Counted from the stretch's first letter, positions 6,108-16,777 are shown. The stretch is DNA of 64,000 nt from Macrostomum lignano (GCA_002269645.1 NIVC01000106.1:186001-250000); one strand, 5' to 3'. The notes: generated from the sequence alone by a model not told the origin. Translations and numbers: made by a program.

Positions 6108-9100
6108 TTATGCATACTCACCGTTCTCTTCGCTGTCGCTCATCGTCTCAGTCAGTCCGTCGTCCAAAATAAGAACTTTACTGGCGGAGGCTACTGTCGA
6201 CTCGAATCTCTGAGCCGTTCCAGCTGACGTTGGCGCGCTACAGTCGAGCACAGCCAACTGGTAGCCTAGCGATGCCGCTTGACAGCGCAGCCGATCCCAC
6301 CCAGCCTGTCGCTTCCTGGTTGGAAGCGGCCAATAATTTCCCTGCTGGGATCGAAGCTTCCGAAGCTGCTTCAGGCAGCGCGGAGAGACTACTACAATCA
6401 GTAGTATTCGACGATTTGTGTAGCGTTTTTGTTCTGCGGGTTTTTATAGTTATAGATTTGCTTCAACGCTACTATTAGTAGTTTTAGTTTAGGGAAATAT
6501 ATCAATAGATAGGCTATTTAAGTCGTTAACTTCAGAATCTTGGTCTTTCTAAATATACTAAATCTCTGTTGTTAAACGGGGTGGGAAGCTTAGGAATCTC
6601 TAAGGTTTGTTTGTTTGTATGCTTGTCCATAACGCTCTAGAGATTGCCTAGAGCACAGAGCACAGATTGAGGTCACAGAATCCCTGTGACCACTTGACTG
6701 ATCCAATTCCTTCGATTTCAATGTTCTAATGGGTTCTATCCTCTTTTTTATCATCCAATATAATCATTGCTGCAAAACTCGGAAAATGAATACTTTTGAC
6801 TCCAATAAAATCGAAAAAATTAAACAAATAATTAGCGTAAAACCCCGACAAGAGCTGAAGCTCTCATCAAATGAAATAAAAAAGAATCTAGGAGTTAACA
6901 ATATTTTCTGGAACTCAATTATTCTAATAAAATTGGCAAGTATAGCCTATGACCGCTCACCACCCACTTCAAAACCAACGTGTCCATCACAAAATGGGAT
7001 GTCAGTATGGACAGGTAAAGCAAAGGACTTTACACTCGCAAATTGTACAGTACTTATACTATATACTCACGCAAATTCGTGTACAGCACGTAGATGAGAC
7101 ATCCAACGGCAACGATCGCCACACCTACAGGCAGCAAGAGTGCTAGAAGCAGCAGAGCTGTCGACGAGTCTCTTTGAATCTCTCCTCCTTCGCCTGCTGC
7201 CGCTTTGTCGCAATCGACCCCCTGATCGGCTAGATGAACGCCTGCGGCACCGCGACGAGTGTTCGGCATCCATTCTTGCTGCTCATCAATGCGATTCCAT
7301 AGTTTAGACAGATCTGAATTATATAAAAATGAGGCTGTTTAGGAGTAACAACTGTTCCACTCCTTACCCTGCGTAGGCTGACTGCACTTGTTTGCAGTTT
7401 TACACCAATGGTCAGCAAACTCCGACCTGCTCAAGGTTTGTGCCTCTTCTCAGCTCTCTTCTCTCCCTTCTCCCTTCTCTCCCTTCTTCTTCTACTCTCT
7501 TCTCTTGTCTTCTTTTCCTCTCGTCTCTCCTCTCTCCTCAGAAGCGTCAGCAGCGCAATATTATCAGATAAGTGTCGTTTGGCATCTTGGATCCAAAAAA
7601 GTTTAAGATGATAGAAAATACCATATGCGGCATCTGTATATTTACTAGAGCCTCTCTGACCCGCAAAAAGTTGCAGAAATCTGCAGACTCTATTTAATCA
7701 GATTTCTCAAAGTTGACAATTGATAGAAGTCTTAAAATCCCATTATTAGATTTAGAATCATAATACAGTATGTATGAAATTAAAAATTAATTGCAGAAAA
7801 TCTGGAACTTACATTAAATGGCATTCAAACACTTTATGGTTTATGACCTCTTTTATTATCGCTCTAAATACGGTGCAACACAAATGCTCTTATCGATTTA
7901 AATAGCAGACTAAATTAAGAGCTTACGTTTGATATCAGTAATGTCATGTTTTAGTTCAATATCATCCGTGCTTGCGAAATACGAAATACTTACTTATTAT
8001 AAAGATGATTGACGAATGGCTTGACCGTATCGCTTCTTGAATGGAGCTTGAACTAGATTTGAGTCTGTACTGAAAAGGTCAAAATTAATGATTTCATTAA
8101 TACGAAGTAAAGGAATATTATTACTTCGAAAAAACATTCTTTCTTAGATTAACTTCTGATTTGTAGATGTATATATATAGACAGCACACAGATTAGATAG
8201 ATGATTGATAGATAGATTGATAGATAGATAGATACGAGTAGATAGATAGATAGATAGATAGATAGATAGATAGATAGATAGATAGATAGATAGATAGATA
8301 GATAGATAGATAGATAGATAGATAGATAGATAGATAGATAGATAGATAGATAGATAGATAGATAGATAGATAGATAGATAGATAGATAGATAGATAGATA
8401 GATAGATAGATAGATAGATAGATAGATAGATAGATAGATAGATAGATAGATAGATAGATAGATAGATAGATAGATAGATAGATAGATAGATAGATAGATA
8501 GATAGATAGATAGATAGATAGATAGATAGATAGATAGATAGATAGATAGATAGATAGATAGATAGATAGATAGATAGATAGATAGATAGATAGATAGATA
8601 GATAGATAGATAGATAGATAGATAGATAGATAGATAGATAGATAGATAGATAGATAGATAGATAGATAGATAGATAGATAGATAGATAGATAGATAGATA
8701 GATAGATAGATAGATAGATAGATAGATAGATAGATAGATAGATAGATGCATGCACATATACGAGTATTCAATGGCCAACGCTATCTTCACTCTTGGCTCA
8801 CCACAAAAGCCAGCGAGCTATGACTCAAAGTCGAAATCAACTTAGTGGAGTCAATCGCCTTTCGTACATCGTAAATGCACCAGGCCTCCCCGCACGAGGA
8901 CTGAAACGCGGTATTAATGTTTCACCAGGATTACCTCGATTAACAGAGTTAATATTGGCCCAATAAGCTCACCAAGTTTCCCGTGATTCTCGCAACGCGA
9001 ACCAATTCATAATCCGGCGATACGTTCGATAAGTCGATATCAATCTTGGAGTTTTTAAAGTACAAACTGTCCCGTTTTGGCTGGCTGACCATGGCATAGA

Positions 9101-10826
9101 AACTATTGACGAGTTCTGGTTCGACGCGACCATCCGCTGTCTTCGACACGCGCAGCACGTAGCCCAGTGTGGCGATCCAATCTCGATTTGGCCTGCTTGA
9201 GTCCAGACTCTCATTTGGACTTTCTGTTGGCAGATATAGTGTTGATTATTGATTGCGTTTGGCATTTGTGCTCACTGCCACTGAGGTGTGTCCTTGTGCT
9301 CAAGCTGTCACTGAGGTATGTCCTTGTGCTCAAGCTGTCACTGAGGTGTGTCCTTGTGCTCAAGCTGTCACTGAGGTATGTCCTTGTGCTCAAGCTGTCA
9401 CTGAGGTGTGTCCTTGTGCTCAAGCTGTCACTGAGGTGTGTCCTTATGCTCAAGCTTTCACTGAGGTGTATCCTTGTGCTCATTGTAATTGAGGTGTGTC
9501 CCTGTGCCTCACTGTCACCGATGGTTTCACATCTTACCAATAAAGTACAGTCCATAGACTTTCACACTGGTCTCAGTCTCAACTCTAACTGTCAGCGAGC
9601 TGTAACTGTCAATACGAGACTCCACAGTCACAATGAGCAAGTCGCAACTTGAGCAATTGTCTAAGCTCTCGGTTCGATAAGAATAGCGTATTGGCTGGGT
9701 ACTGGTAGATCCAAAACTGATGACGGCTACCACTGGTGCGGCAGTGCTGTTGTTGGACTCTTGCCTGTCAGTCAAGATTCTCACTGACAGGTAGGCTCTA
9801 CTCGAATTGACGGCAGAGCTGACGCTGCACAGGGCGAATCTCAACTCGTCCGACTGGCATCGGGAGCGGAGGCAGCTTGGAATCGGAGCTGGCTGCATGG
9901 TTGGACGGACAATTGATTATGAATATTAATCATTTTTTGCCTGTTCGCAAATTTCGCAAGTTTCGCAATTTTTTGCCTGTGCTCTCTGGCGCGATCAACT
10001 GTGTCATGGATTACAAGGACTACAATCGAATTTCTTAAAAATGGTGAGGAATCTCTTAATGGATGCGTCAGATTTTCTCGATCGAAATTGTCTATGGCCA
10101 AACCTACGACAGCACACTAAATGTACTGGCAATAAGACAAATATAGGTTCCTTACCGACCTCTACAGAGTTCATTTCTACGAAACTAGAGTTGTGGCGTC
10201 CTACTTTAGTCTTCCATGTTTTGGGCTCAGCTTAGTAGCGTTTTCAGAATGTCAATTATAGTCAGTATGTTGCCTACTAGTGAGTTAAATATCCAGTAGT
10301 CGATAGGATGTCTGGTAAAGTCAGTATATACTGAAAATCTGATAGTCAATAGATTGCATTGTATAGGGTCTCTAGTAGAGTCAGCTTGTGAGTCTGGTTG
10401 AGTCAGTGACCTAGTAGAGTCAGTAACCTAGTGGAGTCAGTGACCTAGTAGAGTCAGTAACCTAGTGGAGTCAGTGACCTAGTAGAGTCAGTGACCTAGT
10501 AGAGTCAGTGACCTAGTGGAGTCAGTGACCTAGTAGAGTCAGTGACCTAGTGGAGTCAGTGACCTAGTAGAGTCAGTGACCTAGTGGAGTCAGTGACCTA
10601 GTAGAGTCAGTGACCTAGTGAAGTCAGCAGTTCGTCTAGTAGAGCTATTTGCAGTATCTGAAGTACTATAAAACTCAGAAGTCAGACAATTGCTCACGAG
10701 GTTATTTGGGCCTCGACAACTCAACCGATTTTGAGTCCACGCAGGTCGAACAGCAGTGAGCAGCACGCAGAGCAGACTCAGGATCAGAGTGAACTCAGCT
10801 CTCCTAATTGCAATTGAAAGACTCAT
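6108..10826 (-). CDS. Receptor B: type I transmembrane protein with a SEFIR/TIR-like cytoplasmic region (IL-17R-like candidate)
   Basis: Phase-consistent exons 10826-10698 (signal peptide, ..SCRGPNNL|gtgagc), ~9892-9538, 9223-8973, 8900-8802, [one unresolved exon, probably ending 7368], 7313-7071 (TM ALLLLALLLPVGVAIVAVGCLIYVLY), 6433-6122 (or read-through to a stop at 6110-6108). Homologous motifs and intron phases are shared with receptor A. Confidence 0.75.
8190..8746 (+). repeat. (GATA)n microsatellite, about 130 copies, intronic
   Basis: Direct reading; source of the SIYL ORFs. Confidence 0.99.
9268..9510 (+). repeat. 30-bp minisatellite in intron 2 of receptor B
   Basis: GCTCAAGCTGTCACTGAGGTGTGTCCTTGT, about 7-8 copies. 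Confidence 0.95.
10400..10628 (+). repeat. 17-bp minisatellite in intron 1 of receptor B
   Basis: AGTCAGTGACCTAGT(A/G)G, about 13 copies. Confidence 0.95.
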
Positions 10827-16000: not shown

Positions 16001-16777
16001 TTAGCACTTGCTTCTATCCAGGGCAGGCGAATACTGATAAGCATTGCCACAGCGTTCTTCTCCTTGTAGCAGACGCTGTAAAGTAGTTCCTCTTCGATCT
16101 TAAAATTGATTAGAACTTCCAATATTGTTTGGACAGTTTCCTGCAACAAATTTGAAGCTACAGACATGGAAGGATTAAGATACCACTGATATAATTATTT
16201 GACTTATAGCTGGTGTATAGAAATTTATCGAAATCAAGAGTCTCATAGAATTTTGATCTGACATGTGTCAAGACATTGTCTGCGACATCTCAGTTAACAC
16301 AGCAGTGCATACAGCATCAGGCCATTGTCTGCGACATCTCAGCATCTCAGTTAACACAGCAGTGCACGCAGCATCAGGACATGTTTGTGACATCTCAGTT
16401 AACACAGCAGTGCATGCAGCATCAGGCCATTGTCTGCGACATCTCAGTTAACACAGCAGTGCATACAGCATCAGGACATTGTCTGCGACATCTCAGTTAA
16501 CACAGCAGTGCATACAGCATCAGGCCATTGTCTGCGACATCTCAGTTAACACAGCAGTGCATACAGCATCAGGACATTGTCTGTGATTGCAGTTGTCTCA
16601 AACCAGACTCACCGCATGTTTCGGGCCAAGGCAGACAATTTCGCCTGGCTGTCCAAAACTTTTGCCGCCATCAACAGAAGACAACTCGCCAAGAGTCGGA
16701 GCTGATTCTATTAGTTTTGTGACGGCTAAACCAACGATAAAGACACTCGAGAGAAGAAATGATTGGAGAAAATGCAT
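13043..16777 (-). CDS. Receptor A: 556-aa type I transmembrane protein, paralog of receptor B
   Basis: Eight GT-AG exons, all phases compatible: 16777-16613, 16185-15807, 15721-15513, 15146-15125, 15062-14896, 14821-14773, 13957-13736, 13500-13043 (1671 nt). Signal peptide [50 protein letters not shown], cytoplasmic [11 protein letters not shown]...[10 protein letters not shown]. Confidence 0.8.
14030..14740 (+). repeat. 23-bp minisatellite in intron 6 of receptor A
   Basis: GACAC(C/T)(C/A)AAA(T/C)TGACGTCTTCCC, about 30 copies, with alternating variants. Confidence 0.95.
15155..15508 (+). repeat. 12-bp minisatellite filling intron 3 of receptor A
   Basis: ATGACAGACACT; runs from just after the donor to just before the acceptor. 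Confidence 0.95.
16262..16585 (+). repeat. 49-bp minisatellite in intron 1 of receptor A
   Basis: ACATCTCAGTTAACACAGCAGTGCATACAGCATCAGGACATTGTCTGCG, about 6.5 copies. Confidence 0.95.

Follow-up and report, generated by a model that had tools for sequence, protein, structure and literature searches.

A tandem pair of old, diverged paralogues in Macrostomum lignano, probably encoding lineage-restricted type I membrane glycoproteins

Introduction

The IL-17 receptors (IL-17RA-RE) combine a signal peptide, an FnIII-like ectodomain, a single transmembrane segment and a cytoplasmic SEFIR domain (PF08357), and they act as heteromers of paralogous chains. A second group to consider is the Toll/IL-1 receptors with their TIR domain. 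Toll-like receptors (TLRs) have been reported absent from Macrostomum lignano and other flatworms (PMC8609888). Here, we analyse a stretch of 64,000 nucleotides (nt) of the M. lignano scaffold NIVC01000106.1 (assembly GCA_002269645.1, positions 186001-250000), hereafter the window, which is eukaryotic and repeat-rich DNA. A reading made from the sequence alone had placed a hidden tandem pair of diverged IL-17-receptor-like genes, A and B, on its minus strand at 6108-16777. Positions below are those of the window unless another copy is named.

We consider it likely that this region, together with an exon at 52-1, holds two tandem paralogues on the same strand, both encoding lineage-restricted type I membrane glycoproteins of a receptor-like or adhesion-like kind. 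In the databases searched, members of the family are found in M. lignano and in no other species. The new elements are a full model of the unannotated gene A and the recognition of A as an old tandem paralogue of the annotated gene B. Some fused or misnamed UniProt entries are also corrected, and the value of the work is at present mainly one of annotation.

Results

Copies of the region and database models

The genome of M. lignano is neopolyploid, and three assembled copies of the region, L001, L002 and L003, were compared, with mutual identities of 96-100%. L002 is the window's own copy; over its positions 1-19898 the window matches the reverse strand of NIVC01000106.1 with 100% identity. 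The order of a MatE gene followed by A is kept in all three copies. In L001, the second copy, and in L002, A is followed by B, Med28 and a mitochondrial ribosomal protein, while in L003 the end of the contig is reached after A.

The database models are the GenBank entries BOX15_Mlig002524g1 (P0002) and BOX15_Mlig023436g1 (P0003), two older ParaSite models of B (P0004 and P0005), and two partial UniProt models of A, A0A1I8HYF4 (P0001) and P0006, both derived from ParaSite.

Gene B is transcribed and already annotated

The open reading frame (ORF) fragments of both genes splice in frame through canonical GT-AG sites, as the sequence-only reading had claimed. In B, eight exons on the minus strand are joined:

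B exon 1, 10698..10826, minus strand: signal-peptide region, MSLSIAIRR...CRGPNNL, phase 0; exon and junction as in P0002 at the second copy
B exon 2, 9538..9892, minus strand: DELRFALC, CSSCDLLI and VYGLYFI, ends in phase 1; translation matches P0003 exactly
B exon 3, 8973..9223, minus strand: TLGYVL...ITGNL; matches P0003
B exon 4, 8802..8900, minus strand: SSCGEAWC...LAFV; matches P0003
B extra 76-nt exon, 7994..8069, minus strand: YRLKSSSSSIQEAIRSSHSSIIFII, phase 0 to 1; acceptor ttttcag, donor gtaagt
B transmembrane exon, 7071..7313, minus strand: NLSKLWNRIDEQ...DCDK..., transmembrane segment ALLLLALLLPVGVAIVAVGCLIYVL; phase-1 acceptor, ends in phase 1; matches P0003
B exon 7, 6122..6433, minus strand: cytoplasmic, RRILLIVVVSPRC...ASKVLILDDG...SEEN-G; donor G|gtgagt at 6122; matches P0003
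B last exon, start, 1..52, minus strand: VNQQVRLLQRLVMLEK..., continuing for 148 nt past window position 1 and ending GLLQDSFV*; found by tblastn, exact match to P0003

The last exon lies 6 kb downstream of exon 7, and its sequence was read from L002 19847-20046. The translation of exons 2-8 is identical to P0003, a hypothetical protein annotated on the same contig. P0003 is without the first exon of B; the junction of exons 1 and 2 is supported by P0002 at the second copy, and B is annotated in GenBank at L001 as well as L002. This annotation is built on TransDecoder ORFs called in an RNA-seq transcriptome that was assembled with the genome as guide (PMC5730564). Since exons 2-8 equal an RNA-based GenBank coding sequence, the model of B is more than a prediction, and B is a transcribed, already annotated gene.

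The models differ from the sequence-only reading at two points. An end of B at 6108, with the residues EYA*, had been proposed; exon 7 is instead spliced at the strong donor at 6122, so that positions 6108-6121 are intron and the last exon begins at 52. The 76-nt exon had been missed: it is present in the transcript-based models P0002 and P0003 and skipped in P0004 and P0005, whose version of the junction before the transmembrane exon is the simpler one that had been proposed.

P0004 and P0005 also carry 150 additional C-terminal amino acids (aa) that are missing from the RNA-based models. Their UniRef name is "Protein kinase domain-containing protein"; neither PF00069 nor PF07714 was found in P0002 or P0004 by a Pfam search at E<=10. 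No mention of Mlig002524 or Mlig023436 was found in the paper texts and M. lignano supplements that were searched.

Gene A is unannotated in GenBank, and its model is probably one small exon short

The exons of A also join in frame through canonical GT-AG sites on the minus strand, giving an open frame of ~1.5 kb in 6-7 exons:

A exon 1, 16613..16819, minus strand: signal-peptide region, ends CLGPKHA, phase 0; donor gtgagt
A exon 2, 15807..16140, minus strand: predicted beta-rich part of the ectodomain with four N-x-S/T sequons, ends in phase 1; acceptor ttgcag, donor gtaagg
A exon 3, 15513..15721, minus strand: IYGYIL..., phase 1 to 0; acceptor ttttag, donor gtaagc; included in P0001
A exon 4, 14896..15006, minus strand: ASCEAVWC...NYPK, phase 0 to 0; acceptor tcgcag, donor gtaaaa; first exon of P0006
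A candidate small exon, 14773..14821, minus strand: 16 residues, phase 0 to 1; a weak, inferred candidate
A transmembrane exon, 13736..13957, minus strand: ends in phase 1; in-frame alternative starts at 13946 and 13907 (the latter used in P0006)
A last exon, 13043..13497, minus strand: cytoplasmic tail, stop at 13045-13043; alternative start at 13410 as in P0006

The start proposed at 16777 (M15, MHFLQSF...) is probably right, as the upstream ATG at 16819 is GCG in the two other copies and M15 is kept. For exon 2, P0001 uses an acceptor 39 nt further in. The best acceptor of the transmembrane exon (tttcag, 13957), the positional homologue of the RNA-supported acceptor of the same exon in B, is in phase 1, and a small exon of phase 0 to 1 is therefore required in front of it. 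Thus, A probably contains one more small exon; otherwise the transmembrane exon would start at one of its two in-frame acceptors. The candidate at 14821-14773 is one among many, as 163 other formal candidates exist in the same intron and it falls outside the top 15 by a crude score.

GenBank annotates A at none of the three copies, and only the two partial models represent it in UniProt. In P0001, the nearer MATE transporter runs on into exons 1-3 of A; the fusion probably reflects an error of gene prediction or, in a species with trans-splicing, a precursor from read-through. P0006 spans exon 4, the transmembrane exon and the last exon under the name "WSC domain-containing protein"; WSC (PF01822) was found neither in P0006 nor in A by Pfam at E<=10. 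The description of the pair as hidden thus holds for A, while B was already on record as a hypothetical protein.

A and B are old tandem paralogues

All 18 motifs listed by the sequence-only reading were found on the minus strand, in the order and places described. Globally, A and B share 23% identity, and BLASTP aligns them with E=8e-4 over 65 residues spanning the junction of exons 2 and 3. Exon-wise significance was estimated from Smith-Waterman scores against 500 shuffles. The most significant similarity is in exon 2 (z=6.7), followed by exon 4 (z=4.0), and the whole ectodomain reaches z=6.1. The cysteine motifs CxGP, xxC, CSS, SCxxxWC and DCD are common to both ectodomains.

The exon boundaries are equivalent, lying at the same protein positions and in identical phases. 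The common introns follow CxGPxxx (phase 0) and YGLYxx (phase 1), precede (A/S)SCxxxWC (phase 0) and lie just after the transmembrane segment (phase 1), and the phases in both genes run 0, 1, 0, 0 and then 1 after the transmembrane segment. All six introns of A agree with those of B in position and phase; the agreement of the fifth depends on the inferred exon. An old tandem duplication is well supported, because the similarity is significant and the intron positions and phases are shared, as proposed.

The proposal of shared motifs holds for the ectodomain and fails for the cytoplasmic tails. The tail alignment of A and B differs between MAFFT runs, and the similarity there is at chance level (see below), so the tail correspondences are unreliable. 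The pairing of a 12-residue motif of A with RRILLIVVVSPRC of B, and that of a 10-residue motif of A with ASKVLILDDG of B, is suggestive at best.

The family is restricted to M. lignano in the databases searched

Homology searches by word index return M. lignano models only, whether A or B is the query. A HMMER profile of A and B, searched against 1.84 billion representative proteins, gives two matches, the M. lignano models of B and of A. No relative outside M. lignano is found among these proteins, in agreement with the claim of a lineage-specific family.

Both products are predicted to be type I membrane proteins

The hydropathy profiles of both proteins contain a hydrophobic stretch at the N-terminus and one strong transmembrane segment (A ~345-375; B ~355-380). 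The N-x-S/T sequons lie mainly N-terminal of it, four of five in A and all eight in B. The type I topology proposed earlier, with a signal-like N-terminus, an ectodomain carrying cysteines and N-glycan sites, and one transmembrane segment, is therefore upheld by hydropathy and sequon distribution, which support the view that A and B are type I single-pass membrane glycoproteins.

The products are ~515-555 aa long, with an ectodomain of ~320 aa whose N-terminal part is predicted to be beta-rich and contains cysteines, and with a tail of 120-170 aa; with the acceptor used in UniProt the tail core of A is only ~120 aa. Both tails contain acidic, serine-rich clusters (A: STNSDDSDD; B: SDSEEN). Class I PDZ ligands end in the pattern S/T-x-hydrophobic-COOH. 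The C-terminus of B, -DSFV (L002 20030-20046), fits this pattern, and that of A, -SAKS, does not.

From this architecture we suggest that A and B may be receptor-like or adhesion-like proteins of the cell surface, each with an ectodomain that would interact with a partner outside the cell and a short tail that would attract proteins of the cytoplasm. A heterodimer of A and B is possible.

Discussion

How well the paralogue reading holds

Several observations weigh against two functional receptor-like or adhesion-like paralogues. A role as receptor or adhesion protein is suggested by the topology only. Both structure models have low confidence (mean predicted local distance difference test, pLDDT, of 32.8 for full-length B and 45.4 for its tail), so any domain fold read from them is tentative. 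The cytoplasmic tails of A and B are not more similar than expected by chance (z=-0.3). In the other copies of A, 1-nt deletions occur in exons 3, 4 and 6, and at none of the three copies does the transcript-based GenBank annotation include A.

The last two points lead to the alternative that B alone works, and that A, as a duplicate in decay, a young pseudogene or a weakly expressed relic, has a frame that is not yet broken in the window copy, where it is intact. We regard this as unlikely, yet as an alternative to be taken seriously. The deletions are:

A deletion in exon 3: L001 5513-5720 (window 15693), in a CCC run
A deletion in exon 4: L003 14165-14314 (window 14901), in a CCC run
A deletion in exon 6: L003 14891-15151 (window 13811), outside any homopolymer

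A fourth deletion lies just past the stop codon of A. The deletions within A break the frame, one of them outside a homopolymer, and two copies lack the first ATG. However, three of the four deletions are in CCC or GGG runs, where assemblies of long reads typically go wrong. They may thus be such errors or the early decay of redundant copies.

Between the copies, A has 3 synonymous and 9 nonsynonymous differences, which is roughly neutral although the counts are very small, and B has 7 of each kind. These numbers suggest a moderate constraint on B, and A looks less constrained. Exons differ by ~0.8% and introns by ~3%, most of the intron differences being in tandem repeats, and the short introns of A are identical between copies. 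The evidence for constraint between copies is therefore weak, because the copies are too similar and the intron differences fall mostly in repeats.

The missing annotation of A is no proof of silence, because the submission pipeline dropped transcripts overlapping repeats (PMC5730564) and the long introns of A hold minisatellites. Over a longer time, the open frame and the good splice sites of its 6-7 exons have persisted despite an identity to B of only 23%, from which it follows that A was long kept as a coding gene.

Is there a TIR-like module in the tail?

Two AlphaFold2 models were made, one of full-length B from a 6-row alignment (predicted template-modelling score, pTM, 0.26) and one of the B tail alone from a 4-row alignment (pTM 0.35). 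DSSP assigns ~7 strands at B 76-186 and a beta-alpha alternation, (beta-alpha)3-4, in the tail. The alternating beta/alpha tail proposed by the sequence-only reading is thus seen as a pattern in both models, each with a pLDDT below 50, and is to that extent tentative.

One alternative is a cryptic tail module of a TIR-like or another flavodoxin-like type, distinct from SEFIR, in flatworm-specific receptors of an innate-immune type. We judge this improbable. The predicted alternation would fit, and in a Foldseek search against PDB the best match of the full-length model is TIR-STING (E=0.033, prob 0.94), with the TIR domain of TLR1 ranked 21st; as TLRs are reported absent from flatworms, a replacement class is conceivable. 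However, the TIR-STING match is not significant (TM-score 0.17/0.27), stands amid generic alpha/beta folds (GDSL lipase, lumazine synthase, KaiC), and is gone when the tail is modelled alone: all matches of the tail model have E>=0.86, and none is to TIR or SEFIR. Neither model has a match at E<=0.001, and the Ig/FnIII-type matches of the full-length model are non-significant (E>=0.4). With both models below a pLDDT of 50, Foldseek is uninformative here. In the sequence, a Pfam hmmscan of A, B, their isolated tails and the database models detects no TIR domain (PF01582/PF13676) at E<=10.

If the tail were TIR-like or SEFIR-like, this would be notable, since flatworms are reported to be without TLRs (PMC8609888) and the sensing of infection or injury at their surface is poorly understood. 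A cryptic, extremely diverged module of this kind, in a flatworm-specific heteromeric receptor of the innate-immune or cytokine type, is in our view decidedly improbable: nothing found makes it likely, and a small residual chance is left.

Are A and B IL-17 receptors?

The original proposal, strongly diverged chains of the IL-17-receptor kind whose ectodomain resembles FnIII and whose tail is a SEFIR domain, forming a heteromeric cytokine receptor that signals via an Act1-like adaptor, now has very little chance of being correct. The type I topology agrees with it, as do the beta-rich ectodomain segment and the beta-alpha alternation of the tail in the low-confidence models. However, the hmmscan that covered TIR also gives no match to SEFIR, fn3 or IL-17R, and the profile of A and B has 0 matches among PDB sequences at E<=10. 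The tail profile was also aligned by hhalign to a SEFIR alignment of the PDB-verified IL-17RA (4NUX) and IL-17RB (3VBC, 9OT1), which gives a probability of 1.3% over 28 columns; the best segment, itself non-significant, pairs ASASKVLILDDG of the tail with the IL-17RA strand ESNSKIIVLCSRG.

In comparison, the SEFIR domains of IL-17RA and IL-17RB match each other at E=1.6e-7 in a simple phmmer search, whereas A and B have no relative outside M. lignano. No SEFIR structure is among the Foldseek matches listed, the tail core of A is short for a SEFIR domain when the UniProt-style acceptor is used, and no relevant paper on SEFIR or IL-17R in flatworms was found in the literature. The assignment to IL-17R, SEFIR or TIR made by the sequence-only reading is thus not supported, and from their sequences A and B are not demonstrable members of these families.

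Repeats and the possibility of artefacts

There is scarcely any reason to see the models as artefacts, chance ORFs stitched together in repeat-rich DNA: minisatellites in the region do create long spurious ORFs and the automated models disagree among themselves, but the idea is already refuted for B, whose model is an RNA-derived coding sequence, no exon lies inside a tandem-repeat array, the similarity of A and B is significant with shared intron phases, and exons differ less than introns between copies (0.8% vs ~3%), even if much of the intron difference is in repeats.

Every long intron of A and B, as well as the spacer between them, has a mini- or microsatellite array of its own, and the long spurious ORFs in the ORF list are products of these arrays. 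Their periods are 4, 12, 16, 17, 21, 23/46, 30 and 49 nt, and they include (TAGA)x138:

Repeat arrays: 5158-5907, 8194-8747, 9266-9507, 10400-10627, 11227-11896, 12441-13004, 14037-14737, 15166-15507, 16268-16583

In the last intron of B, at ~5905-5965, CCCTAA/CCTAA units resembling telomeric repeats (ctaaccctaaccctaaaccctaaacc) form a short interstitial run beside the 49-nt minisatellite.

Neighbouring genes

Other genes recognised in the window are:

17568-19621 and 20784-22725, minus strand: two tandem MATE (MatE, PF01554) multidrug/toxin-extrusion transporter genes, directly upstream of A
32252-32914, minus strand: single-exon CLAMP / flagellar C1a-32 gene (PF14769, E=1.6e-36)
54797-56074, plus strand: first part of an amiloride-sensitive channel gene (DEG/ENaC, PF00858)
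62015-62782, plus strand: start of a rhodopsin-type G-protein-coupled receptor gene (PF00001)

Comparison with known systems

A and B resemble the IL-17 receptors in their single-pass type I topology, in the approximate size of the tail and its predicted beta-alpha alternation, and in being paralogous chains encoded side by side that could in principle pair. They differ in that no test gives any sequence or profile similarity to SEFIR or to the IL-17R ectodomains, and in the short tail of A.

The likeness to the Toll/IL-1 (TIR) receptors consists of the type I topology, a small, predicted alpha/beta module in the cytoplasm and one non-significant Foldseek match of B to a TIR-containing protein. 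This match was not reproduced, and unlike these receptors A and B are without a TIR match in Pfam and without a leucine-rich repeat or immunoglobulin ectodomain detected by Pfam.

A further likeness is to the orphan hypothetical membrane proteins of M. lignano itself, BOX15_Mlig002524g1 and BOX15_Mlig023436g1. Here the difference is that the paralogue A and the tandem pairing are missing from the GenBank annotation, whereas B without its first exon is BOX15_Mlig023436g1, and its product has no Pfam domain and no homologue outside the species in the databases searched. The locus is in this sense an ordinary taxonomically restricted tandem gene pair, one half of which is already annotated as hypothetical.

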